Part shown: positions 20,428-63,601 of the stretch, in pieces
How positions within the stretch are numbered: the first letter of the stretch is position 1
How the letters are laid out: the number at the start of each line of letters is the position of its first letter
Virus record (IMG/VR): IMGVR_UViG_3300050014_000823
Location: 124,001 to 188,000 of that record
DNA: 64,000 bases
Strand: one strand, 5' to 3'
Notes under the pieces: generated by a model
What the model was told of the DNA's origin: nothing
Databases searched by the model: none
Seen by the model: the letters and a program-made list of their open reading frames with translations, nothing else
Translations under genes and position numbers: made by a program

Positions 20428-21720
20428 ATGATAAAAGCAGTTAAAATAAGACTTTATCCGAACAAAACTCAAAGTAGTTATATAAATCGTCTATGTGGTT
20501 CATATAGAAAGATTTATAATATGTGTTTGGAGAAGAAAATAACCGCTTATACAACAGATAAAACAACAGTAACATTTGGTGATTTAGGTAAATATTTTCA
20601 TCAAGACCTAACTAAAAATGAAGAATTTAATTATCTTAATGAACACAATACTAAAGTATTAAAGCAAAGTATTATTGATTTAATGGATGCCTATAAACGA
20701 TTCTTCATCAACAATACTGGTTTTCCAAAATATAAATCAAAACATGACAGTAAACAATCGGCAAGGTTTCCTTTAGAAGCAATATCAAAACTAAATAGTT
20801 ATTCAGATAATAAAATAACTTTAGGTAAAAACTTACAAAAGATTGGCTTTGAATGCAGTGACAGAGATAAAAATTATTTAACTAATCATAAAGATAAAAT
20901 TAAATCAGCAACTATAAGTAGAACCAAATCAGATAAATATTTTTTATCAATACTAATTGAAAATATAATTGAAAAACAAATACCAGAACCAACTAATGAT
21001 ATTTTAGGTATTGATATTGGTATAAAAGATTTTATGGTTTGTTCTGATGGTCAGGTATTTGATAACTTAAAGTTAAAAAGAAATAATGAAAAGACTTTAA
21101 CTAAATTACAAAGACAATTAAGTAAAAAAGTTATTGGGAGTCATAACAGGTATAAAATCAAATTAAAATTAGCAAAGAAACACGAAAAATTAAATAATAT
21201 AAAAATAAATTACATACATAACATTACAACTCAATTAGTTCGTGAGAACCAAACGATAGTTATTGAGAATTTAAATGTTAAAGGTATGTTAAAAAACCAT
21301 TGTTTGGCAAAATCAATTCAAGATTTAAGTATCAACGAGACATTCAGACAGTTAAAATATAAATCTGAATGGTATGGAAGAGATTTGATTATAATAGACA
21401 GATGGTTTCCTTCATCAAAATTATGTAATGTTTGCGGTTATAAGTATAAAGAATTATCATTAAAAGAAAGGTATTGGACTTGTCCAGACTGTGGAACACA
21501 ACATAATAGAGATTATAATGCCGCAACAAACATTAAAAATGAAGGTCAGAGAATTTTAAATAATAAAATAGGGACACGTTATCCCGAATTTACGCTTGAG
21601 GACAATCCAACTATGGATGACAGACTTAGCAATAAGGTACTAAAAAGTAGTGATTGGTTGAGACAAGAAGAAAAAAGTACAAATAGTGAACGAAGTGAAC
21701 TTCGTACTAATTTTTTGTAG
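20428..21720 (+). CDS. tnpB: RNA-guided endonuclease TnpB
   Basis: N-terminal AVKIRLYPN HTH; RuvC-I LGIDIG, RuvC-II IVIENL, Zn finger CNVCG/CPDCG, RuvC-III HNRDYNAA; the D/E/D triad is intact. Confidence 0.95.
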   Translation: MIKAVKIRLYPNKTQSSYINRLCGSYRKIYNMCLEKKITAYTTDKTTVTFGDLGKYFHQDLTKNEEFNYLNEHNTKVLKQSIIDLMDAYKRFFINNTGFPKYKSKHDSKQSARFPLEAISKLNSYSDNKITLGKNLQKIGFECSDRDKNYLTNHKDKIKSATISRTKSDKYFLSILIENIIEKQIPEPTNDILGIDIGIKDFMVCSDGQVFDNLKLKRNNEKTLTKLQRQLSKKVIGSHNRYKIKLKLAKKHEKLNNIKINYIHNITTQLVRENQTIVIENLNVKGMLKNHCLAKSIQDLSINETFRQLKYKSEWYGRDLIIIDRWFPSSKLCNVCGYKYKELSLKERYWTCPDCGTQHNRDYNAATNIKNEGQRILNNKIGTRYPEFTLEDNPTMDDRLSNKVLKSSDWLRQEEKSTNSERSELRTNFL

Positions 21721-49293: not shown

Positions 49294-50133
49294 TTATTTA
49301 AGTCCTTGTATTAATGTATCGCCATATTTAATGCCATCATATCCCATATGCTGTGCTTTTTCGGCAATTGCTTTATTTTTTAAGTTAATTGGTGGAACTT
49401 TATATTGTTCACCTAATTTTTCAAAGTTTACGTGCGGAAACCATGCTTTAGCAAGTACTTCTGCAGGTATTTGGCTGTCCTTATACTCGATGCCTAAGTC
49501 ATTGGTATCAAGTAAGTTTTCAAAATCAATCTGATATTTAATAAATCCTTCAACAGGTGTTAATGTAAAGAAATTTCCAATGACGGACCTTTCTTTAATT
49601 GGTTCTCTACGATACGCAATTATCGACTGGTCATTTTTGCTTGGATTTTCTGATTCAACGCCTGCATTATTTTCTTCAAGTGCTGAAAGAAATTCATTGT
49701 AGCTTACACCTGAGTTTGTTTGATTATTTGCATTAAGAACATCCTGTCCGACCACTTCTTCCATTTTCTGCACTTCGGTATAGTCATAAACGTCCTGTAT
49801 TTTATTTAAAAGTCTGCAGGCATCTTTAAATTCTAAGTCGATTTTAATTGCTGTCAACGGTAAGTTATCTGTTGTGGCAAAAACATACCGATGATGCCCG
49901 TCACAGATGGTATTTTCTTTATCAAGCCAAATTGGATTCATATCATTTGGCTTTGCTTTTTCAACATCATCAGAAAAAGTAAATCCTTGTGACACATTTA
50001 AATTTTTTAACTCTTCTGGACTAATTTGAATGTATTCATAATCAACACCCTCCTCATCGAGTTGTTTCACGACAGCATCAACAGGTGCGCTAATCTGTGG
50101 CAAATAGTACGGCTTGTGTTTCATTCTTATCAT
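49294..50133 (-). CDS. ParB/sulfiredoxin-like N-terminal domain protein
   Basis: PIWLDKENTICDGHHRYV motif. Confidence 0.6.
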   Translation of the reverse strand: MIRMKHKPYYLPQISAPVDAVVKQLDEEGVDYEYIQISPEELKNLNVSQGFTFSDDVEKAKPNDMNPIWLDKENTICDGHHRYVFATTDNLPLTAIKIDLEFKDACRLLNKIQDVYDYTEVQKMEEVVGQDVLNANNQTNSGVSYNEFLSALEENNAGVESENPSKNDQSIIAYRREPIKERSVIGNFFTLTPVEGFIKYQIDFENLLDTNDLGIEYKDSQIPAEVLAKAWFPHVNFEKLGEQYKVPPINLKNKAIAEKAQHMGYDGIKYGDTLIQGLK

Positions 50134-50873
50134 ATTACTGACAAATTTTTTAATTCACATTCTAATGCTTCTTTAACAGTGCCTAATACAGAATAAGGTA
50201 TTTTAATTAATTTATAGCCATTGTTAATAGCATAATTAATTTTAATTTTGTCACGTTTTTTTGTATCCAATAAAGCATTGTCACCACCAAAAAAATCAAC
50301 AGATTTATAATGTTGAATTCCATCGAACTCTATGAATATTTTATGTTTGGGTAGATAAAAATCATAATATAAATTCGAAACAGATTTTAAATTATTAAAT
50401 GTTACTTCACGCTCAAAGTTAATGTTGTGTTTCAACAAAATATTTGCTATTTGTTCTTCATTATGTGAAGCACGACATTTTCTACATCCATATCCATGTA
50501 AATGTGCATGGGGCGTTTGTTCAAATTTACCATGCTTATTACAAATAATCGTTATTTTGTTTTCATATCCACCATATTTTACTAACGAATAATCAAATCT
50601 ATTGCCGTGCATTTCTTTTGCTTTTTCAATAAAAGTTTCATTGGTGAACCTATTTTCTTTTGAGATTTTTTCGTATTGACATTTCTTACACCCATATCCC
50701 GTTAAATGGTCATTCGGTGTTTGCAAAAATTCTCCATGTTTAGTACAAATAATAATAACTTTATTTTTGTTGCCAACATACTCAACTTTCGAATAATCAT
50801 ATTTATCACCATGTTTATTTAGTGATTTTAATATGAATTCTCCTGTGTTTGATTTTTTTGTTGACCTAATCAT
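50130..50873 (-). CDS. Free-standing endonuclease (DUF723-like repeats plus Vsr-like domain), copy 2
   Basis: Same repeat and YDFYLPKHKIFIEFDG.QH core as copy 1; late motif at 50887-50895. Confidence 0.75.
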   Translation of the reverse strand: MIRSTKKSNTGEFILKSLNKHGDKYDYSKVEYVGNKNKVIIICTKHGEFLQTPNDHLTGYGCKKCQYEKISKENRFTNETFIEKAKEMHGNRFDYSLVKYGGYENKITIICNKHGKFEQTPHAHLHGYGCRKCRASHNEEQIANILLKHNINFEREVTFNNLKSVSNLYYDFYLPKHKIFIEFDGIQHYKSVDFFGGDNALLDTKKRDKIKINYAINNGYKLIKIPYSVLGTVKEALECELKNLSVI

Positions 50874-50896: not shown

Positions 50897-51475
50897 TCAG
50901 ATTATAATTTTTTTTAGTTCGTCTTGAATAATGCATAATGCATTCTGACTTCGACTTGTTTCTGTCAAAGCAATAGTACCTTCAGTTGCACGATAAATAT
51001 TAAATTCAACACCCGATGGTAGTTTACTTCTGATTTCTTCGTATGCTTCAATATCAACATCACGGTCCTCATAGACGTTTATTACCTTCAAGTCTGGTAG
51101 TTGCTGTACATAACGCATAACCTTAACACCTTTGTTGCCTTCTGCACGTTTCATGTCAAATTTATCGACTTTGATTTTATTTGCATCAAGTACTGCTTCA
51201 ACTTCTGAACGTAGTTTTTCCATTCTCGATGTTAAAACAATAACATAAGTTCCGGGAGTTACAATCTCTTTTTTGAGTTGTTTTAACACACTTGGAAATG
51301 GTTTGATGTCAAAAACCTCTAAGTCCAGGCTTTCTGGTCTACCCCACCATCCACTAAATGGATATTCTTTATCCATTTTCTCCGACCATTCTTTTTTACC
51401 TGTTTCTGGCATAGGAGAATTCATAAGTGTCCCGTCAAAATCAAATACTGCTAATCTCTTAATCATAACAAACAA
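50897..51475 (-). CDS. HAD phosphatase of the RNA-repair type (Swiss-army-knife HAD-like)
   Basis: AVFDFDGTLMNSP.P (motif I), W.GWW..P.SL, VLTSR (motif II), VYEDR (motif IV). Confidence 0.75.
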   Translation of the reverse strand: MFVMIKRLAVFDFDGTLMNSPMPETGKKEWSEKMDKEYPFSGWWGRPESLDLEVFDIKPFPSVLKQLKKEIVTPGTYVIVLTSRMEKLRSEVEAVLDANKIKVDKFDMKRAEGNKGVKVMRYVQQLPDLKVINVYEDRDVDIEAYEEIRSKLPSGVEFNIYRATEGTIALTETSRSQNALCIIQDELKKIII

Positions 51476-51960
51476 TTATATTTTATTTCATTAATATTGC
51501 TTATCTCTGAGCAATACGGTGCAAATATATCTTTTTTTATTAAATAAATGTTCATTTCCTTAGTAATATTTCCTTCTTGTTGAACGCTAAAGGTTTCATA
51601 TCGAGTTTCAGGATGCTCAACAATACAATCGTGAATTCTTTGCTTCTCAATTATGTATGCTGTTTCTCCGTCTGCAATAAGCCAATAATCTGCTTTGGTA
51701 ATCAATAAACCCGACCACCTGCCATTACAGCCAACCTCAATACAAATATTGCCCGTAATATAAGACATTTCATCATACTTACATTCAAGAGTCTTTGAGG
51801 ATTTACTGAAATCTCCGTTGAAAAGAATTATGTCGTAGAAACTATAATCTTCTCTTTTCATGTTTTTGTATGCGAGAGGTAATACCTTACTATTGATATC
51901 TTCTAAGACGAATTTTTCAAAATCAAATCCTTTTGCAGATGCTTCTTTCCAACTTGGCAT
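51463..51960 (-). CDS. PD-(D/E)XK nuclease-like protein
   Basis: YDII...TLECKYD...TGNICIE...SGL..TKADYW pattern. Confidence 0.6.
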   Translation of the reverse strand: MPSWKEASAKGFDFEKFVLEDINSKVLPLAYKNMKREDYSFYDIILFNGDFSKSSKTLECKYDEMSYITGNICIEVGCNGRWSGLLITKADYWLIADGETAYIIEKQRIHDCIVEHPETRYETFSVQQEGNITKEMNIYLIKKDIFAPYCSEISNINEIKYNCLL

Positions 51961-51961
51961 A

Positions 51962-54900
51962 TTATTCTACTTCGGTTACTTTTCCTGTTAATATCAATGG
52001 TTCACTCAAATTTACCCACATGCTTAATTGATTTGACATCATTGGTTTACCACCCTGTGCACGATTTACGGCAATAGTTATATGTGGCTTCTTATTCTTT
52101 GTGAGATATTTATCCACCACCACACCAACTGCCATAACCATATCATCCATAGAAAATTCTGTGGCTTCCATAACAATAGTCATGCCCAAGAATTTCAAAT
52201 ACTCTGGAGCAATCGGACCTAAGTTCATTGTCATGTGATGTGCAATAGTTTCCCAACCTTCGGGAATCATATTACCAAGTCTCTTAAGCAATGCTGTACG
52301 GGATTTGTCATCAAGCACCACGGCAGTATATTTCACATTTTTATTCATGTCTTCGTCAAGTACTTCGTTATCAACTAATTTGTGATATAAATCGTGTTTT
52401 AATTTTTCATCATGGCTGAAATCCTCATAATTATTCTGTAAGAATTCCAATACGGATTTATCTGATGCACTTTCATATCCACCTTGATTCCACTCATAAT
52501 ATTTATCCGTAAAGAAATTAATATCAACCTGTTGTCCATTTACGTTCCAAGTAGGCTTCTCTTGACCTGTTTCAGGATAACTATATTCGTTAAGTGTAAT
52601 TGGTTCGCCTTTAACATTCTCATAATACTCCGGATAAAAATTATATTGAGGATTACGTCTTTTTGCAGCTCTTAAGAAGTCATTAACAATTTTTATGTTG
52701 TCATAATCATATTCATCTGCAGCAAAATCATAACTACTGTCAGCCAAACCGAAATCATTTGTGCTTCCAATTCTGTTTACAAGCATCCATTCAGTCAAAT
52801 AATTATACATGGCTTCTGTATCACCCTCAATAAATCCCAATGCTCTACCAATATTACCATGATTAAAATAACCGTCCTTTTGTGCAAGAAATAAATTGCC
52901 CTCTTGGTCAATTATTCCTCTGACTCCCGGACCGATATTCCGTAATGATTTAGGATTTTCATATATTGGTGACTTTTTACCATTTCTATCTCTTACCATA
53001 GCAACTGGTTCTTCTTCCTGTGCCTGTACTGCACCCCTTGCAATCACGTCTTGTTCTGCACTCTGATTTGGCATGTTAAACATCCTTTCAGCAGCTTTAT
53101 CGGCAATACTTTCATCTACACTACCGTCAAGCATAAGTTTATCGCCATCATTGCCTTTATGACCTTTCCAAGTATAAACCAATTCAGTACCGTTAAGCAT
53201 TCTGTTCTTCTCGAATGGTTTAATGTACTTCTGTCCTTCTCCGGGTTTAACATACGCAATTGTAATATGTGGATGATAATCGGGGAATGCACTTGTATGT
53301 GGTAATGCTTTCATTATCTCATTTAATTTTGTAAGTTCTGGAGATTCAACATCGAACTTAACAACATCAAACTTAGGATTACCAGTGAAAAACGATATGC
53401 CCTTAATTCCTATCTTAATTGGTTCTATCGGCATATTTTTTTCAAACAAACTAAAGCAATCTTCTGAAGTTACTTCATCGTGAAAACCATATAATATTGT
53501 AGTATGTGGTTCTGTTTCAATTCCATATCCTGGCTCGTCATAAACATCATCAGGAGAAATTATTGACGTAATTTTTGTCCAAATCGGAACGTCAAGAAAC
53601 AACATCAGACATCCATATTCTATTTTGTCCGTGGGTTTTACTTCTTCCTTAATCATTTCGCCATTTTGTTTCGCCAAAGCTAATAAATCTTCACGATTAT
53701 TCCTAACCTTATCTGCATAAACCTTTAGCAATAATGATTTTTGCATGTCGCCAATTGCCTTACCCTGTAAACCAAGTTGTGACAAATCATTACCATTAAC
53801 AGCTAATTCGTTGACAGTTTTAGGATATTTGCCCTGTTGAAATTCTTCTGAGGCTTTTTGAAGTCCCATTGGAATTATCTGACTCTGTAATGCCTGTGGA
53901 CTTAGCAGATACATATTATGTGCAATTGACCTATCGAGAACATCATGTGTTATGTCGGGTAATGTAAACGCTAATTCAAGTGCTTTAATTTCCTTATATG
54001 TTGGGATATCACCTTTGAGATTATTCTTGTAAAATTCCGAAGGACTCTGAACAGTACCAACTGCCAACAGATAAATAAATTCACCCATTGTTTTAACATC
54101 GGCAATTCTATCGCTAATCTGCTTTGGCTGTCCACCGAAAATCTGTTCATATAAGCCAGTATTCACAAGTAAATCCGCACCCATTTTCACATTACCCTTC
54201 TTGATTATCTTATCGAATTCCGTTAAAATTCTCTCTGGTGCAATTTCTTTAACCCTCTGGGCATTTTCTTTTATCATCTGCATAGTCTGTGGCTCAATTG
54301 TAAACCCGAAACGTGATGCAAATTGTACTGCACGCAACATTCTCAATGGGTCATCACTGAATGCCTGTGGATTAACAATACGAATAATTTTGTTTTTAAG
54401 GTCTTCTTGACCACCAAATGGGTCAACTATATTACCCTCTGAATCTTTTGCAATAGCATTAATTGTAAAATCCCTGCGTTCCAAGTCTTTTTCAATCGGT
54501 AGTGCATGGTCAGACTTAACATCAAAACCTTGATGACCACCTTCACCCGTAGCTGTTTCAGTACGTGGAATAGCAATGTCAATATCATCGGTAGCACCCT
54601 TTGGCTTGAATTTCAACACACCAAATGATTTACCAACAGCATCTACACGACCATATTTGCCAAGAAGTTGTTCAAGTTCTTCAAACGGCACACCAGTAAT
54701 AAGCACATCCAAATCTTTGGATTGTTTACCAAGAAATTCATCCCGGACCGCACCACCAACACTATAAATTTTACCACCAAGTTGCTCAACCTCTTGTTTG
54801 AAAGGCAAGTCTTGTAATGACATTATTTCCGCTTCGTTCATGACTGATTCTTCAAGTGCATTATCTCCATAAAAACGTATTGATTCCGCTATGAATTCCA

Positions 54901-57900
54901 TAGTCGGATTTTTTTCTTTTGCCAAAGATAAGAATTTTTCGTAATATGGCAACGCTTCTTCTCTTTTTGGTACAGTTTCCCAATAACTTGAATGAAAGTT
55001 TCTTTTTTCTTCTGGATATAACGGTGCATTTGACTCTCCAACTAAGATGATATTATCTCTTTTATATCGTTGAACAGTCAAAAAATTAGTTGGTGGGGTT
55101 TTATCCCAATGTTCCTCATTTTCAATGACTCCCAAGCTATTGAGGGTATAGAGTAATTCGAAGTGTATAACAACACTTTTTTGTTCAGTGTATAAGTTTC
55201 CTTCTTTGTCAACAACACCCCGGACATCACCCCAAATATTTTTCCAAGATTTCGGATTTTTTATTATTACCAACCCATTTTCGGGATTATTGTAAACGAT
55301 ATCTTCGGAATCCTGCTCCCTGTTGAACCTATCGTTGAATTCTGCATCAGGATTCGGAACATTAAACATTTTTTCCGCAGCAACATCCGCTACACCTTCG
55401 TCAACACTTACTGGTTCTCCTTCAATAAAAGTATAATATTCTTCATAAAACTCATATTGTGGATTTCGTCTTTTTGTGGCTTTCAATATATCAATTGCAT
55501 TGTCATAGTTATGCGCATTTGAATTAATATATCTTGAAGAAATGTCCCCCAAACCGAAATTATTTGTTAAGTCAACCCTATTAAGTAATTGATATTTATC
55601 TAATTCTGAATATATTCTTGCATCAATCGTGAATAATCCCAATGCTTTTGCTATATTACCGTGGGTAAATGAATAATCTGCTTGTGCAACATATAGATTT
55701 CCATCTGTATCTGCGATTGCCCGTACATCCCTTTGAAATCTTTCTAAGGATTTGGGATTTTTATAAATTTGACTAACTCTTCCAATGGTATCTACTACTT
55801 CTCCAACAGGTTCATTCGTATTTTTTTCTATCTCACCCTGTGCTTGAACGTCTTGTTCTGCATGTGGGTCGGGAATATTAAATGCTTTCTCAGCATATTT
55901 ATCAGCCACACCTTCCATTTGATATTTCTTACCACCCGTAGGTTTGAAATTCTTCTTAAATGCAGTGTACATCAGACTTGAAATTCTTTCAGATTCTCCT
56001 TCTTCACTGATACTCTCTGTTCTTTTTCTGAAAAGCAATTCAACTTTATTTGCAATGTCATGGGCGTTATCGTATGTATAACCATAATGCTTGATAAGAT
56101 AGCTTTCAACCCTTTCATGAAGTAAAATCCCTTCAAAGTCGTTTGGCTTTGTCAAATGTACGTCATCAACCCAAAGTTCGTCTGCTGGAATGTGCTTAGC
56201 ATATTTTTGCTGTGATTTTGGTAAGTCATAGTCAACCCAATGATTGCCACCTTCAACCCACTCAATAAAACCACTGTCACGCACTTCGTCACCATTAACT
56301 GCATAAACGGGATTGACATCAATACCGTCATTGTATGTACGGATTAATTTCTTATCCAATTCATGTGTAGTATTGTCTTTCTCAATCTGTGGTTCACTTA
56401 CAGGAAATTCTTCTTCGTGTATTGTGTTTTTCATTTTATCGAGATACTGCTCATAGTCTGTATCTTGAAATATTTCAGAAGTTTCTTCGTCTGGCTCATC
56501 GTATGCTTCTAAACCATTAATCTCATAGAAAGCATTCATTCTCTTTTTAAAATCATCAGTAATATCGACTTTGCCAATATAATGACCTTGTACTGCCCTT
56601 CTGAATCTAACTTCTTTTAAATAAGTAAAATCACCTATTTCCCAATGAGAAATGTCCGCATCGGGTTTTTCGTTTATTTCATAAACATAAAAAACTCCCG
56701 GATTTTTACCGTGTTGCATAAACATCGAATACAGTCCCATTAAAGCACCACCAACACTTTTACTTGCAGCAATTTCTGGTGTTTCACTAACCCAAAACGT
56801 ATCATACTTATATATTGGATTACCGTCATCGTCAATTGCTTCGTAATAACCTTCGGGTTCAAATTCAATCGTTTCACCCATATATTTTTCAACAGCACGA
56901 TAATATTTTTCACCACCACTTGTTACCACTTCATTTATTGCAGTATTGGGAAGTCTGTACATCAACTGCATAGTCTGGAAGTCCTTATTCCTGCCTTTGT
57001 TCATGATAAATCCCAATGATTTATACCATGCAGTTAGTTTAGACTTACTTGCGCCCCACATACTATCGGGAGTTAATGTAACAATTAATTTATTTCTGTC
57101 GGCATAGTCAAAGATAAGTTTCATTGCATCATTGGCATATCCTTTACCTCTGAATTCTTTGTTGATAAAAATTTTATCTATTGCGATGTAATGATTCTGA
57201 CCTTGAACGCCTCTGTCCATGATACCTACCTCACCAACGACTTGACCATCATCAGTTATCTTAAGCGAATCATATCCGCTTAAATTGTTTGGTAGATTAA
57301 GATTCACAGACTCTTTAATACTACCAAATGTCAAGTTGCCAATATCTCCTTGATTACAGGCAGTGCTTGTACCGTCACCATTACCACCAAGTCTGCACTT
57401 TTTCTTAACATCAACAGTTTTACTGCCAGATTGAAACGACTGAACTCTTTCTGTTATTTGAAATTCGTCTTGGGTTGCATCACCGACAACATGGTTATAT
57501 TCTAAGTCTTCGTTTACTTCACTGTTTGCGTTTAAATCGTTGCTTATTGAGGGTGAAGTGTCCATATTATTGTATGTTGGAAAATTATCTTGACCAAAAC
57601 TATTGTCTGTCGAATATAATGCTGAACCGTCTTCGTCAACTTGAACAGGTTCTGGCATATTATTAGATTTAAAAAAATAATTACCAAAACCTACATCAAA
57701 AAATCCCAAATTACCATTTGGTTTATATCCTAAGTTATTTGGATTTGTATAATCTGTACTTTCTAAGCCGTATTTTTTTACTTCTTCGCCAATTTTAAGT
57801 ATTTTATCAAAAAATTCTCTGTCTTGTGGATTTCTTGCAAAGTATTTTTGAACCTTATCTTCATCCACATTGTCATCGCCAAAACGATTGTGTATGAAAT

Positions 57901-60028
57901 GGTCAAGAACATCGCCATAGTTTGCACCCATTATTTTTTCAAACGCAAATTTCATTCTTTCAACTCTTGCAATAAAATCAGCCTTATCTGTTCTTAACTT
58001 CTCTAAGATTATCACATAAAGGTCATATCTCGTTTCGCCCGACAATGTATTAGACTTAATTGAGTAGACCTTATATGGTTGAGCAATGTATTCTAATGGT
58101 TTACCAATAAGTTCAAGATTTTCATTTGCTTCGCTTTGGTCCTTAGTAACCTTTAATACTAAATTGTTTCCTATATCATATGCATAGCCAAATACACCAT
58201 CACCAAGAGGTTTTGGCTGACCATATCCAAACTTCTGTGCTACACTATTCGCCACTTTATTAGCGACTTCTCTCGGAAATCCTGTAGGTTCTTCATTCAG
58301 TACTTCTTCACCTTCGGGTAAAGAAATTCGGTTTTCTGGTGGTAAATCCGGTACAACTACACCCATGCATCCACCTATGTCATAGTATGTTAAAATACCG
58401 TTCTTATATCCCAAATTACTGAGAGTCATATAATCGTCTGACTTAATCATCAGTGCAAGTAATTCTCTTTTAATGTCATAGAGTCCCAACATAAAACGAT
58501 ATGCCTTTTCTCTATCGCCTGCAGCAATATTAGCATCGGGATTTGCCGTTAAAATTAGTTTAGCTAATTCTGGAAAATCGTTAAATGTTTTTCCAAAAAA
58601 TTCCGTATCTTCTTTCTTAGGTTTACCTTTGATTAAAATTCTCAATAACCTACCGTATAAGTCTTCACCGAGCGAATTAATTATTTCAGTGTATCTTTCA
58701 AATTCCTGATGTGGTTTATCAACAATATTGTCTTCGATAAGCGCATAAACTGCTTTGTTTTGTTCGGTGTCAGTTACCTTATACACATTGTAAACCATTG
58801 CAAGTGTTTTAGGCTTACCCCTGCTAATTTTTAAACCAGCATCGACCTCACATGCATCAGTAGTAATTTTTAAAACCCTGTTGTTATTAACCTCATAAGC
58901 ATATCCATATCCACCACCACCAAGATATTTAATAGCACCAAGATTTAACTTCTGTGCAACCGCATTAGCAAGAGTATCAGAATATTCTCTTGGTAATTGC
59001 ATTGCTGCAACTTTTGGACTACTCTCATTTATTTCTACAGTTTCTTCCTCAAGTGGTTCTCTATCATAGAATTTACCTCTGATAAGATAGTCTTGAAGTT
59101 CCAATAAGTTACTATAAAATTTCTTTTTCTCAGGTACGTGTTCAAGTACTTCTTTAAGGTTGTTTACTACATCATGAAATTCATCGACAATATATGGAGC
59201 ACTTGGAAGTTTTGATGTTGGATATTTGTCTCTGTTGAGTACAAATGAAATAAAATCTTCATTAATTACGCCAGGTCCGTCACCTACACCGTAAGGCATA
59301 AGTCCCCACATAGCTTGTCGGGTATCAACGGCATCTTGTGGTGGTAAATCACCAAGCATATCGTCATTACCATCGGCAAAGTTATAAAGTTCATACATTT
59401 GATACTTTTGGTTTTTGCCACTATAATGAGTATCTACAACTTCATCATTTAACCCATAGTCGGTTAAAACTATTGCAGGTTTACCGTTACGCAGTACTTC
59501 TCCAAAGGTACTTGGTCTACCCATATCGCCTGAGTTTTGAGCATAGCTTGCAACAAAATCGGCTAATGAAAATGCAAATTCGTTTTTATTCCAAAAAAAT
59601 TCTTCAAGTTCGGGTGATTGTGGAAATATTTTCTTATGCCCCTTACTTAATTCTTCGGCATTCTTAAGAAACTCTTTTAAATCATTCAAACTTGGAATAC
59701 CTGTTACTTGTTTAATACGTGCTTCATTGACTTTCTTAGCCTTTTCTGCTATCAACCAAGTATCGTCATCCATAGAATCAATAACCTTTGCAAGTATATG
59801 ATGATTGCTTTCAAAATATCCTGCACCTGTCTCTGCTTCGTTTTGACCAACACCTTTGGGGTTTTTCGCAAGTTTTAATACCTTTTCACCATCAATGTCA
59901 TAAACGATTCGACCACTACCACTACCAATTCTCGGTAAGTATTGATTTGCGTACTTTATTTTTCCATTAAATGATTTAATTTTAAGGAATTCTGGTAAGA
60001 AATTCGTTTTGAATTCAGCGTATGTCAT
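51962..60028 (-). CDS. 2688-aa multi-enzyme polyprotein: 3 kinase-like domains, GNAT, ART-like, HExxE domain, 3 copies of an unknown domain, CCA-adding enzyme, 2 2H phosphoesterases
   Basis: Kinase GxGxxG/VLK/DxG x3; GNAT FRGKGYA; CCA motifs GGAVRD..DLD, RRDFTINA, DPLRMLR; 2H motif pairs HTT/HIT and HMT/HIT; late motif at 60049-60057. Confidence 0.85.
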   Translation of the reverse strand: MTYAEFKTNFLPEFLKIKSFNGKIKYANQYLPRIGSGSGRIVYDIDGEKVLKLAKNPKGVGQNEAETGAGYFESNHHILAKVIDSMDDDTWLIAEKAKKVNEARIKQVTGIPSLNDLKEFLKNAEELSKGHKKIFPQSPELEEFFWNKNEFAFSLADFVASYAQNSGDMGRPSTFGEVLRNGKPAIVLTDYGLNDEVVDTHYSGKNQKYQMYELYNFADGNDDMLGDLPPQDAVDTRQAMWGLMPYGVGDGPGVINEDFISFVLNRDKYPTSKLPSAPYIVDEFHDVVNNLKEVLEHVPEKKKFYSNLLELQDYLIRGKFYDREPLEEETVEINESSPKVAAMQLPREYSDTLANAVAQKLNLGAIKYLGGGGYGYAYEVNNNRVLKITTDACEVDAGLKISRGKPKTLAMVYNVYKVTDTEQNKAVYALIEDNIVDKPHQEFERYTEIINSLGEDLYGRLLRILIKGKPKKEDTEFFGKTFNDFPELAKLILTANPDANIAAGDREKAYRFMLGLYDIKRELLALMIKSDDYMTLSNLGYKNGILTYYDIGGCMGVVVPDLPPENRISLPEGEEVLNEEPTGFPREVANKVANSVAQKFGYGQPKPLGDGVFGYAYDIGNNLVLKVTKDQSEANENLELIGKPLEYIAQPYKVYSIKSNTLSGETRYDLYVIILEKLRTDKADFIARVERMKFAFEKIMGANYGDVLDHFIHNRFGDDNVDEDKVQKYFARNPQDREFFDKILKIGEEVKKYGLESTDYTNPNNLGYKPNGNLGFFDVGFGNYFFKSNNMPEPVQVDEDGSALYSTDNSFGQDNFPTYNNMDTSPSISNDLNANSEVNEDLEYNHVVGDATQDEFQITERVQSFQSGSKTVDVKKKCRLGGNGDGTSTACNQGDIGNLTFGSIKESVNLNLPNNLSGYDSLKITDDGQVVGEVGIMDRGVQGQNHYIAIDKIFINKEFRGKGYANDAMKLIFDYADRNKLIVTLTPDSMWGASKSKLTAWYKSLGFIMNKGRNKDFQTMQLMYRLPNTAINEVVTSGGEKYYRAVEKYMGETIEFEPEGYYEAIDDDGNPIYKYDTFWVSETPEIAASKSVGGALMGLYSMFMQHGKNPGVFYVYEINEKPDADISHWEIGDFTYLKEVRFRRAVQGHYIGKVDITDDFKKRMNAFYEINGLEAYDEPDEETSEIFQDTDYEQYLDKMKNTIHEEEFPVSEPQIEKDNTTHELDKKLIRTYNDGIDVNPVYAVNGDEVRDSGFIEWVEGGNHWVDYDLPKSQQKYAKHIPADELWVDDVHLTKPNDFEGILLHERVESYLIKHYGYTYDNAHDIANKVELLFRKRTESISEEGESERISSLMYTAFKKNFKPTGGKKYQMEGVADKYAEKAFNIPDPHAEQDVQAQGEIEKNTNEPVGEVVDTIGRVSQIYKNPKSLERFQRDVRAIADTDGNLYVAQADYSFTHGNIAKALGLFTIDARIYSELDKYQLLNRVDLTNNFGLGDISSRYINSNAHNYDNAIDILKATKRRNPQYEFYEEYYTFIEGEPVSVDEGVADVAAEKMFNVPNPDAEFNDRFNREQDSEDIVYNNPENGLVIIKNPKSWKNIWGDVRGVVDKEGNLYTEQKSVVIHFELLYTLNSLGVIENEEHWDKTPPTNFLTVQRYKRDNIILVGESNAPLYPEEKRNFHSSYWETVPKREEALPYYEKFLSLAKEKNPTMEFIAESIRFYGDNALEESVMNEAEIMSLQDLPFKQEVEQLGGKIYSVGGAVRDEFLGKQSKDLDVLITGVPFEELEQLLGKYGRVDAVGKSFGVLKFKPKGATDDIDIAIPRTETATGEGGHQGFDVKSDHALPIEKDLERRDFTINAIAKDSEGNIVDPFGGQEDLKNKIIRIVNPQAFSDDPLRMLRAVQFASRFGFTIEPQTMQMIKENAQRVKEIAPERILTEFDKIIKKGNVKMGADLLVNTGLYEQIFGGQPKQISDRIADVKTMGEFIYLLAVGTVQSPSEFYKNNLKGDIPTYKEIKALELAFTLPDITHDVLDRSIAHNMYLLSPQALQSQIIPMGLQKASEEFQQGKYPKTVNELAVNGNDLSQLGLQGKAIGDMQKSLLLKVYADKVRNNREDLLALAKQNGEMIKEEVKPTDKIEYGCLMLFLDVPIWTKITSIISPDDVYDEPGYGIETEPHTTILYGFHDEVTSEDCFSLFEKNMPIEPIKIGIKGISFFTGNPKFDVVKFDVESPELTKLNEIMKALPHTSAFPDYHPHITIAYVKPGEGQKYIKPFEKNRMLNGTELVYTWKGHKGNDGDKLMLDGSVDESIADKAAERMFNMPNQSAEQDVIARGAVQAQEEEPVAMVRDRNGKKSPIYENPKSLRNIGPGVRGIIDQEGNLFLAQKDGYFNHGNIGRALGFIEGDTEAMYNYLTEWMLVNRIGSTNDFGLADSSYDFAADEYDYDNIKIVNDFLRAAKRRNPQYNFYPEYYENVKGEPITLNEYSYPETGQEKPTWNVNGQQVDINFFTDKYYEWNQGGYESASDKSVLEFLQNNYEDFSHDEKLKHDLYHKLVDNEVLDEDMNKNVKYTAVVLDDKSRTALLKRLGNMIPEGWETIAHHMTMNLGPIAPEYLKFLGMTIVMEATEFSMDDMVMAVGVVVDKYLTKNKKPHITIAVNRAQGGKPMMSNQLSMWVNLSEPLILTGKVTEVE

Positions 60029-62118: not shown

Positions 62119-62904
62119 TTAATCGTACTTTTTAAACGATAATGTTATGTATTCAATCAAATTTGGTACAATGTCCAGGTAATGCATTTCATCCACATCA
62201 TACCAACCATAGTTTGTGTTTTCGGCATTATCTAACTCAATTTCAGTTGGGTCGCCCTCATATCGACAAGCAAAAACTGTTTCAATGCTCTCAGGATTCC
62301 TTTGTATTGTGAAGGTCCTGACAAACTTATTAATTTCCAACCCAATTTCTTCAAGTATCTCTCTCTCAATAGCACGCTGTGGAGTTTCACCCTTCTCAAT
62401 AGCACCACCAACCAATGCCCATTTCTCCGGCATCCAAGGTGCTTCTTTGCCTCTTTTCAACAGTAAAATCTTATTGTCGTTATTTACAATAACTGCAACG
62501 GCATTTTTTTGTTTTTCTTCTTTCTTCTCTTTCTTTTCTTCATTCAGTGTTGGCATGGGACTATTCGGCATTAATTCTGAATTAGGATTTGATGTCATAT
62601 CCTGCTTGGTTTCTTTTGACCTTGCCACACCTGCTCTATCTTGTGCTAATGAAGTTTCAATAAACTGTCTCATTGCTTCCCCACCAGCAAGGGCATATTG
62701 TGTTTTATCATCAGTCTGTGGATTAAAATAATCAAAGAAGTTTTTAAGTCTTTTCATTGCTTGATATGTTAAATTACCGTTCTTAAGAATGAAATTAGCA
62801 CGTTTAAGACCATTTTCATTCGAAGTGGATGCTTTAGCCACCGCAATACCATTAAGTACATTTGAGGGTATCCTATATGTCTTATCTTTGAGATATTGGT
62901 TCAT
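62119..62904 (-). CDS. NUDIX hydrolase fused to an N-terminal helical domain
   Basis: Nudix box GGAIEKGETPQRAIEREILEEIGL; TLNEE linker. Confidence 0.85.
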   Translation of the reverse strand: MNQYLKDKTYRIPSNVLNGIAVAKASTSNENGLKRANFILKNGNLTYQAMKRLKNFFDYFNPQTDDKTQYALAGGEAMRQFIETSLAQDRAGVARSKETKQDMTSNPNSELMPNSPMPTLNEEKKEKKEEKQKNAVAVIVNNDNKILLLKRGKEAPWMPEKWALVGGAIEKGETPQRAIEREILEEIGLEINKFVRTFTIQRNPESIETVFACRYEGDPTEIELDNAENTNYGWYDVDEMHYLDIVPNLIEYITLSFKKYD

Positions 62905-63601
62905 ATGCTTCTAAGATTTTGTTTATTCTGTTGATTTGGTCAAACTTTATTCTCAATAGAAAGTAGTTGTTTGATTCTGCAAAAGTATTTTTTATTTCAT
63001 CGTTAATTTTCTGGATTCTAAACTTATCAAGTCCACCGAAATGGTTATTAGCTATAAAGTGTTGTGCACCATCAAACTCTATTAATACGTTGTTCTCTGG
63101 AAGAAAAAAATCGAATGCAAGTTTATTTATATTTTTACAGTCATTAAATTTTTTCTCTCTTTCAAAAGCAATTGAATTATTTATTAAATATTTTGCAATC
63201 TCTCTTTCTCCGATAGATTCTGTACAACTGGGACAACCACATCCTTTTAAATGAGTATTTGGTTTTTGATTAAATTTTCCATGAATCGGACATAATATTT
63301 CTACATAAATATGTGCTGTTATATAGTTAACATTAGAATAATCATATCTATCTCCGTGAATTTCTTTTGCTTTAGTAATAAAATAATCAGTATTTTTTCT
63401 TAATTTCATTTTACCACACAATGGACAACCACAACCCTCTAAATGAGTATTTACTCGCTGTATGAATTCGCCATGTGTGGGACATGATATGATAATATTA
63501 TCGTGTGTATGTTTAAAATCAACCAAATCATACTCATAATAATTATTGTGCACAGCATTTGCTTTAGCAATAAACGCATCTATAGTTAATATCCTTGCCA
63601 T
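62882..63601 (-). CDS. Free-standing endonuclease (DUF723-like repeats plus Vsr-like domain), copy 3
   Basis: Same repeats and FDFFLPENNVLIEFDGAQH core; overlaps both neighbours. Confidence 0.75.
   Translation of the reverse strand: MARILTIDAFIAKANAVHNNYYEYDLVDFKHTHDNIIISCPTHGEFIQRVNTHLEGCGCPLCGKMKLRKNTDYFITKAKEIHGDRYDYSNVNYITAHIYVEILCPIHGKFNQKPNTHLKGCGCPSCTESIGEREIAKYLINNSIAFEREKKFNDCKNINKLAFDFFLPENNVLIEFDGAQHFIANNHFGGLDKFRIQKINDEIKNTFAESNNYFLLRIKFDQINRINKILEAYEPISQR

Follow-up and report, generated by a model that had tools for sequence, protein, structure and literature searches.

The giant open reading frame (ORF) P0001 lies on the minus strand of a 64,000-nucleotide stretch of viral DNA, which was analysed as a whole and is called the window here. 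The window covers bases 124001-188000 of the IMG/VR virus record IMGVR_UViG_3300050014_000823, which is 299,144 bases long and estimated to be 91% complete. Judging from the baseplate genes, tail-fibre genes and SbcCD-like nucleases in the window, its source is a jumbo tailed phage (myovirus). The N-terminal part of the P0001 protein carries three consecutive kinase-like domains, referred to as D1, D2 and D3 (Table 1). The explanation put forward here, to which a probability of roughly 0.5 is given, is that all three are minimal protein-kinase-like (PKL) phosphotransferase domains, arranged as an array, that would act on protein substrates in the manner of gp0.7 of phage T7.

An initial annotation had placed three tandem kinase-like domains of a single phage protein at positions 57690-60028. 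The motifs are indeed present there, and every motif string that it quoted is found in the translation of 51962-60028 (minus strand). However, the stretch is the N-terminus of a 2,688-residue ORF and not a protein of its own, and its end at 57690 cuts D3 at the DxG motif, whereas D3 extends to approximately residue 800 (window position 57629). The Gly-rich loops are IGSGSGRIVY in D1 (residues 34-43), LGGGGYGYAY in D2 (369-378) and LGDGVFGYAY in D3 (608-617). The strands with the ß3 lysine read VLKL (50-53), VLKI (385-388) and VLKV (624-627), the catalytic loops DMGRPSTFG (168-176), DYMTLSNLG (532-540) and DYTNPNNLG (759-767), and the DxG motifs TDYG (189-192), YDIG (549-552) and FDVG (777-780). 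A composite kinase-motif regular expression applied to the six-frame translation of the window matches D2 and D3 only, and gives no match in 2,000 shuffles of P0001.

More than 60 long homologues of 1.5-2.9 thousand amino acids share the N-terminal order D1-linker-D2-D3. Some giant homologues combine D1 with just one D2/D3-type domain, and others have a different N-terminus. No further copy of the D1 or the D2/D3 family was found by family searches elsewhere in the phage genome. In an alignment of 119 D2/D3 domains drawn from the more than 60 giant homologues (A2), the second glycine of the Gly-loop, the ß3 lysine, the helix glutamate, the catalytic-loop asparagine and both the aspartate and the glycine of DxG are invariant. 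The first glycine of the loop is kept in 117 of the 119, and the catalytic aspartate in 113, with glutamate in the remaining 6. In D3, E799 is likewise invariant, 19 residues past DxG. The D2/D3 profile also reaches TTK/Mps1 in the PDB (E 0.008), where 'IkStDYlnpeNLGY..G.LkfFDvG' aligns to the catalytic aspartate, the asparagine (HSDLKPAN) and DFG. For D1, an alignment of 79 sequences (A3) shows G37, R40, K52, A54, N56, G59, Q62, D168, G176, D190, G192 and Y202 to be invariant, and E66 nearly so (at least 90% of sequences). The strict conservation of Lys, Glu, Asp, Asn and DxG in the D2/D3 family, and of Lys, Asp and DxG in the D1 family, therefore argues for selection on catalysis.

The same observations bear on whether these motifs could be chance resemblances in a protein of some other fold, or the ORF no real gene at all. 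This notion draws on the lack of any curated family model on residues 1-800, and it is effectively refuted. The frame stays open for 2,688 codons' worth of protein and has the long homologues described above, the D2/D3 profile reaches 2,268 representative clusters, the composite motif did not arise in the shuffles, and the confident structural models described below find PKL structures as their matches.

The initial annotation had proposed structure prediction as a check, and the models do show the kinase fold. The AlphaFold2 model of D3 has a mean predicted local distance difference test score (pLDDT) of 94 and a predicted template-modelling score (pTM) of 0.90. The model of D1 with its linker has a mean pLDDT of 88, with the core (residues 1-200) at 90 or above, and the fold of D2 is taken from its homology to D3. 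A Foldseek search of the PDB with D3 gave 127 matches at E<=1e-3; the matches listed are all protein kinases (MAP kinases, GAK, GCN2, CIPK) apart from one aminoglycoside phosphotransferase, APH(2'') (probability 1.0). With D1, the search returned methylthioribose kinase, APH(2''), ULK1 and PknS at a probability of about 1.0. The VIA-wide search, which is independent of Foldseek, led to the same group of proteins. For D3, the best 50 matches are all kinase-like (ULK4 with Z 9.7, BRAF 8.9, GCN2 8.5, TTK 8.4, TkArkI 8.3 and APH 8.1-8.2). For D1, nearly all of the best 50 are kinase-like (ULK4 7.8, APH(2'') 7.7, Rio2 6.9, TkArkI 6.8 and Ark1 6.6), the sole exception among these best rows being SAICAR synthetase, with which D1 has an ATP-grasp-like N-lobe in common. 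On the strength of these models, the three domains very probably adopt the PKL fold.

As modelled, each domain consists of an ATP-binding N-lobe, a helical remnant of the C-lobe, a catalytic loop and a DxG metal-binding motif. The fold is bilobal, with alphaC beside a sheet of five strands in the N-lobe, and with the catalytic loop and the DFG strand pair in the C-lobe. The alignments to solved kinases run from the N-lobe to DFG and then stop. The models end approximately 20 residues past DxG with a few coil or strand residues, and without an activation segment (APE) or the helices alphaF-alphaI. Solo D1 proteins stop equally early, 10-15 residues past DYG...HY. In the D3 model, four helices are inserted between the hinge and the catalytic loop. 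The linker between D1 and D2 has a pLDDT below 50 at residues 212-220 and 239-251, with helices at 257-317; it is conserved in the giant homologues and missing from the solo D1 proteins.

D2 and D3 keep every catalytic residue, and on the basis of their sequences and models it is probable that both are active, ATP-dependent kinases. For D1, the same kind of evidence favours catalytic activity less firmly. Its catalytic loop, G-D-x-G-R-x-S-x-x-G, has lost the asparagine and has a conserved S173 in its place, which counts against the array being made up of three kinases; the loss of this metal-binding residue may mean another chemistry, a lower activity or inactivity. It is thus conceivable, if improbable, that at least one domain, D1 above all, is a pseudokinase serving as a nucleotide sensor or scaffold, or, like SelO and SidJ, uses the kinase fold for AMPylation or glutamylation. 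The family-specific invariant residues R40, N56, G59 and Q62 of D1 would fit such a role. All three domains also lack alphaF, the helix on which the catalytic spines of active eukaryotic-type kinases are anchored. An N-lobe-only construct of the related kinase SteC is inactive (PMC13395416). Set against this are the strict conservation of the catalytic residues in both families and the ArkI proteins, which are active PKL kinases of only 173-216 amino acids.

Although they stand in tandem, the three domains belong to two families. D2 and D3 are paralogues from a tandem duplication, 32% identical over approximately 217 residues (BLASTP, E 2e-20), and D1 has no significant BLASTP similarity to either. 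The D1 and D2/D3 families are connected when their profiles (A3 and A2) are compared with hhalign (E 8.7e-5, probability 60%, 176 columns), with the Gly-loop, VLK, the catalytic loop and DxG in register. In proteins other than P0001, the D1 profile also reaches D2/D3-like domains at their Gly-loop (E of about 1e-3). As the link appears by profile-profile comparison only, D1 is a distant relative and not a recent paralogue. The initial annotation had described all three as paralogous kinases; this holds for D2 and D3, but D1 represents a separate and remotely related family.

The D2/D3 family is very large. An exhaustive search with its profile recovered at least 2,268 representative clusters (50% identity, metagenomes) at E<=1e-3, of which 898 also pass E<=1e-10. 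Many of the proteins are giant and often hold 2-5 copies of the domain, accompanied by domains of RNA ligase, CCA-adding enzyme, 2H and cytidylyltransferase type; solo versions of 206-276 amino acids occur too. D1 is also found as solo proteins of 200-230 amino acids, and a shape search of the ESM Atlas gave a TM-score of 0.85 by the match. Among phage GenBank records, tblastn found D1 relatives in two Xanthomonas jumbo phages only, both matching D1. The only PHROGs match to the three domains is phrog_4301 (unknown function), on D1. A pattern scan for D1 gave no confirmed relative in the bacterial genome collection.

A mechanism can be proposed for the domains as kinases. Mg-ATP would be bound between the Gly-loop, Lys and Glu on one side and the Asn and DxG on the other, and the gamma-phosphate would be transferred to a hydroxyl positioned by the catalytic aspartate. 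The domains would act as individual effectors of a polyvalent protein early in infection, beside its GNAT, CCA-adding and 2H modules, and would phosphorylate host or phage proteins on Ser/Thr, along the lines of T7 gp0.7, SteC and OspG. The eukaryotic-type substrate-binding lobe is missing, and substrate recognition would have to come from the four-helix insert before the catalytic loop, from the short conserved tail with the invariant glutamate at its end (E799 in D3) or from neighbouring modules. The initial annotation had gone further and suggested different targets for the domains, possibly host defence proteins that they inactivate, a suggestion that finds no support in the present results.

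Kinases of this general form have been predicted before. C-lobe-less kinase domains of the Ser/Thr/Tyr type were predicted in polyvalent proteins of phages of Bacteroidetes and Verrucomicrobia, along with solo versions (Iyer et al. 2017, PMC5512222), and so the general idea of truncated kinases in polyvalent proteins is not new. The domains of P0001 resemble this Kinase-PolyVal family (PF18762) in having lost the C-terminal subdomain while keeping the residues for ATP binding and phosphotransfer, and in residing within giant multi-domain phage proteins, with solo versions and with relatives that carry ART-PolyVal and InPase. The function of both has been predicted by analogy with T7 gp0.7. They differ in that the His-insert-Asp hallmark of the family (PMC5512222) is missing: D2 and D3 have S-x-D in its place (S757-x-D759 in D3) and D1 has G167-D168. 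Furthermore, P0001 combines three tandem domains from two families and fuses them to tRNA-repair enzymes. The domains are thus treated as two uncurated PKL families, akin to the predicted polyvalent kinases and not demonstrable members of PF18762. What is new is the existence of two uncurated and very large minimal-kinase families, their tandem arrays, and their consistent fusion with enzymes of tRNA and RNA ends in jumbo phages.

The analogy with T7 gp0.7 (PF27024 of Pfam 38), drawn already in the initial annotation, has some support, more in structure than in sequence. Against the BFVD, the closest matches of D3 are uncharacterised marine-phage proteins (E 3e-10), and the best annotated ones are T7-like 'protein kinase' entries (E of about 1e-6). 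When language-model features are compared, a cluster that carries Phage_T7_kinase ranks among the nearest to D3, and likewise to D1. Like the domains of P0001, gp0.7 is a small phage PKL kinase without the canonical eukaryotic-type motifs; unlike them, it stands alone as an early protein that also has a shut-off domain, and is not part of a giant polyprotein. At the level of sequence, the hhalign comparison of the D2/D3 profile with gp0.7 is weak (E 1.4e-3, probability 18%, the Gly-loop/Lys region of the N-lobe only), and that of the D1 profile with gp0.7 gave nothing.

A second precedent is offered by the bacterial effectors SteC (PDB 8JBI) and OspG. Both have a depleted C-lobe, and the D1 profile matches SteC at E 3e-4 through the N-terminal helix, the Gly-loop and the Lys strand ('IGSGS..VY....V.K...N..G'). 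These effectors are delivered into another cell and modify its proteins, which may be a further likeness. On the other hand, the match covers just 54 residues of the N-lobe. SteC has, moreover, retained H-D, an activation segment containing S379, and alphaF, and depends on them for its activity (PMC13395416); all of these are missing from the P0001 domains.

Several further findings have to be set against the proposal of three protein kinases, besides the weak or absent hhalign results with gp0.7. Some concern the fold: the VIA Z values of 7-10 are 'middling' by the tool's own scale, and the TM-scores to solved kinases are low (0.3-0.4). The fold is argued for because the matches are uniform and agree with the sequence motifs, and not because the scores are high. 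Others concern family membership. No Pfam, NCBIfam or PADLOC-independent curated model matches D1, D2 or D3; Pfam Pkinase (PF00069) has no match on residues 1-800 at E<=1, and phmmer searches of the PDB with single sequences returned nothing relevant. PF18762 has no match in P0001, in the 299-kb genome (E<=10), in 26 D2/D3 homologues or in 26 D1 relatives. As far as the searched literature shows, no C-lobe-less phage polyvalent kinase has been tested biochemically. As regards packaging into the virion or injection, P0001 has no fusion to MuF or a portal protein, and its gene lies between polB/NUDIX (replication) and the baseplate genes.

The remaining objections concern the substrate. The peptide-binding C-terminal subdomain of protein kinases is missing from all three domains. 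With the exception of the GNAT module, the fused and neighbouring enzymes of known family act on RNA ends or nucleotides. In addition, when 26 giant homologues found with the D2/D3 profile were compared with Pfam, matches to ABC1 (14/26) and APH (13/26) outnumbered those to Pkinase (3/26), with WaaY matched in 1/26. That the substrates are proteins is a tentative view, one that falls somewhat short of even odds. The slight lean towards it has four grounds: among annotated viral structures, those of T7-like kinases come nearest; the best solved matches are eukaryotic-type kinases; D1 can be linked to SteC by sequence; and the domains are acidic.

The matches to APH (PF01636) and ABC1 (UbiB, PF03109), which are small-molecule or atypical kinases, provide a further connection. 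D2/D3 homologues match these families with best E-values of 3e-9 and 2e-12, respectively, and have a D-F-H-x-G-N loop. The D3 and D1 models both find APH structures among their best matches. The one match that was mapped by position is to APH, at residues 1306-1352 of the distant homologue P0133 ('...VDFHPGNLMKRGSDYVVIDLG'), and falls within one of the domains that the A2 profile detects. D2/D3 are thereby connected in sequence to the PKL clan, if transitively, and the APH-like D-F-H-x-G-N loop is that of the more canonical relatives. The P0001 domains themselves reach neither model; their loop reads D-Y-x-N-x-x-N-L-G, with a one-residue insert, and they have no counterpart of the helical C-terminal part by which APH enzymes bind their substrates.

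These relatives, the RNA-acting partners and the precedent of ArkI together make kinases of RNA or nucleotides nearly as likely as kinases of proteins, although such a role is still considered rather unlikely. The domains would then belong to a machine for RNA repair or protection, either as 5'-OH polynucleotide kinases that heal cleaved tRNA, or through an ArkI-like 2'-O-phosphorylation that blocks metal-independent anticodon nucleases. In either case their partners would be the CCA-adding enzyme and the 2H phosphodiesterases within P0001 itself, along with the HAD_SAK-like phosphatase and NUDIX encoded nearby. These partners are recognised by family models (PolyA_pol/CCA, 2_5_RNA_ligase2, tRNA_lig_CPD, HAD_SAK_1 and NUDIX), and their synteny is kept in other jumbo phages. 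In more distant giant homologues, kinase domains of this type (up to 5 copies) are flanked by a KxDG ligase and a cytidylyltransferase-like domain. Among the 26 giant homologues compared with Pfam, CTP_transf_like is found in 18 and RNA_lig_T4_1 in 3, and the Pfam tally holds no P-loop kinase family. The relatives with the APH-type D-F-H-x-G-N loop, and the excess of ABC1 and APH matches over Pkinase, speak for this role too.

The closest model for an RNA kinase is the archaeal tRNA 2'-kinase ArkI/Ark1 (PDB 7VNX, 8YV5), which is likewise a very small PKL kinase. ArkI is a 216-amino acid PKL kinase that 2'-phosphorylates tRNA and confers nuclease resistance, and its gene in S. tokodaii is in an operon with a tRNA nucleotidyltransferase (PMC9095486). 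This genomic link to a CCA-adding enzyme is reminiscent of the fusion in P0001. The structural match to ArkI has a Z of 8.3 over 141/216 residues for D3, alongside the lower values for D1. However, these matches are tied with those of dozens of protein kinases, and there is no similarity at the sequence level. ArkI has a basic tRNA-binding patch, whereas the D2/D3 domains are acidic overall (median isoelectric point, pI, of 4.9, none above 6.5, n=119); as the CCA domain of P0001 is acidic as well, this is weak evidence against RNA binding. The phage already encodes a P-loop AAA_33 kinase and Rnl2-type ligases, so that a PKL polynucleotide kinase would be unneeded. Lastly, polyvalent proteins typically mix unrelated activities, and a fusion is accordingly a weak sign of a common pathway (PMC5512222).

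The more specific proposal that the three domains, and the arrays of up to five copies in their relatives, are PKL-fold RNA kinases phosphorylating tRNA together with the CCA-adding and 2H enzymes appears unlikely. Were it true, it would mean that 5'-OH ends can be healed without a P-loop kinase, or that 2'-O-phosphorylation makes tRNAs resistant to host anticodon nucleases. Each paralogue could be tuned to a different tRNA or site, which would constitute a new principle of phage counter-defence.

Whether the domains are kinases can be tested directly at K52, K387 and K626 and at D168, D532 and D759, with the confident models in hand. The identity of the substrate would decide whether these enzymes serve in host takeover like T7 gp0.7 or act in the repair of phage RNA as RNA-directed kinases of a new class. 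Both outcomes would show how a kinase works without a substrate-binding lobe.

Table 1. Features of P0001 and of its surroundings, with positions in the window and residues in the P0001 protein.
Feature	Window positions	Strand	Residues	Remarks
Transposase	20428-21720	+		phrog_506, E 3e-114
HNH/DUF723-type homing-endonuclease-like gene	50130-50873	-		paralogue of 62882-63601
HAD phosphatase, Swiss-Army-Knife RNA-repair type	50897-51475	-		495 bases downstream of the giant ORF end; HAD_SAK_1 E 1.4e-4, below cut-off
165-aa ORF	51463-51960			between the giant ORF and the HAD_SAK-like gene
Giant ORF P0001	51962-60028	-		one intact frame, 2,688 aa; kinase-like array = N-terminal 800 residues (57629-60028)
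Second 2H phosphoesterase, fungal tRNA-ligase cyclic-phosphodiesterase type	52019-52171	-	~2620-2670	tRNA_lig_CPD 23.2 bits (cut-off 23), E 5.6e-5
~190-aa repeat domain	52586-53188	-	2281-2481	one of three
First 2H phosphoesterase	53234-53515	-	2172-2265	2_5_RNA_ligase2 28.2 bits, above cut-off; weak Acb1 E 1.8e-4
CCA-adding / poly(A) polymerase-type nucleotidyltransferase	53675-54769	-	1754-2118	PolyA_pol E 3e-23; PolyA_pol_RNAbd E 1.2e-16
~190-aa repeat domain	54884-55408	-	1541-1715	one of three
~190-aa repeat domain	55397-55981	-	1350-1544	one of three
Acidic stretch	56074-56937	-	1031-1318	within region 1031-1345
GNAT acetyltransferase	57008-57256	-	925-1007	Acetyltransf_1 24.4 bits, above cut-off; Acetyltransf_7 E 2.3e-5
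D3	57629-58291	-	580-800	minimal kinase-like domain; G611, G614, K626, E633, D759, N765, D778-V-G780
D2	58292-59011	-	340-579	minimal kinase-like domain; G372, G375, K387, E394, D532, N538, D550-I-G552
D1-D2 linker	59012-59398	-	211-339	disordered ~205-255, then a small helical module
D1	59399-60028	-	1-210	minimal kinase-like domain; GSGSGR 35-40, K52, Q62/E66, D168, S173, D190-Y-G192
NUDIX hydrolase	62119-62904	-		upstream of the giant gene; Pfam NUDIX E 1.3e-19; syntenic in relatives
HNH/DUF723-type homing-endonuclease-like gene	62882-63601	-		paralogue of 50130-50873

Based on its sequence, P0001 as a whole is a multi-enzyme protein of the 'polyvalent' or Swiss-army-knife type, in which many unrelated catalytic domains are joined and whose relatives vary in architecture. 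Its CCA domain also matches the tRNA nucleotidyltransferase family phrog_2244 (E 1.8e-67). The relatives swap modules, among them ART-PolyVal, InPase, an Rnl1-type ligase, a cytidylyltransferase-like domain and 2H-SAK. Such module shuffling is typical of polyvalent and Swiss-Army-Knife proteins. Swiss-Army-Knife RNA-repair proteins were reportedly defined by Burroughs and Aravind in 2016.

Two further parts of P0001 lie outside the known families. The domain of about 190 amino acids that is repeated three times (37-48% pairwise identity, E down to 3e-36) is marked by the pattern 'NPKSL...G.VD.EGNL...HG.I...LG...RRNPQY.FY.EYY' and has no Pfam, NCBIfam or PHROG match. The acidic region between the GNAT module and the first repeat (approximately 315 amino acids, net charge -36, pI 4.5) has no family match either; its 'ILLHERVESY' motif might be a degenerate metal site.

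Around P0001, the genes are lined up as polB - NUDIX - three small genes - giant gene - HAD_SAK-like - ... - gp25 baseplate. Two further contigs of jumbo phages, 355 kb and 133 kb long (L005 8001-13652 and L006 8001-14999), have the same order, although their giant proteins, with 1,883 and 2,332 amino acids, are of different size and carry different modules. The HAD_SAK-like gene also matches phrog_415 'polynucleotide kinase' (E 1e-6), and in related jumbo-phage contigs this position is filled as well.

Beyond the window, the genome of the phage has three matches to Rnl2-type ligases (PF09414), of which two are clear and one is weak, as well as an ORF for a P-loop AAA_33 kinase (G000:C1 73105-73581, 94819-95316, 99887-100459 and 84163-84456). 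The giant protein is thus not the only place of RNA-repair functions, which are distributed over the genome. The presence of these genes also led to the rejection of the idea that the PKL domains replace a missing P-loop polynucleotide kinase. RtcB was not found in the phage genome. Rnl1 was not found there either, but the control genomes likewise gave no match, which makes this negative uninformative.

The more distant giant homologues (P0133, P0130, P0236 and others) are built differently. Their D2/D3-type kinases, of which there are up to five, are interspersed with an N-terminus resembling a KxDG ligase and with a domain of cytidylyltransferase-like type (GRFQPFHxGH). The resulting ligase-kinase-kinase-nucleotidyltransferase-kinase architecture recurs and is not described in the literature consulted.

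Signs of mobile elements are seen at the locus and elsewhere in the window. The two paralogous HNH/DUF723-type homing-endonuclease-like genes bracket the giant-gene locus (phrog_559, E 3e-62 and 6e-59 for 62882-63601 and 50130-50873, respectively). In the syntenic regions of related phages, DUF723 and LAGLIDADG genes occupy variable places. The transposase is the only large plus-strand gene of a minus-strand stretch, and its patch has a low GC content (0.286) and reversed GC and AT skews. Therefore, the gene probably represents an insertion element within the genome of the phage.

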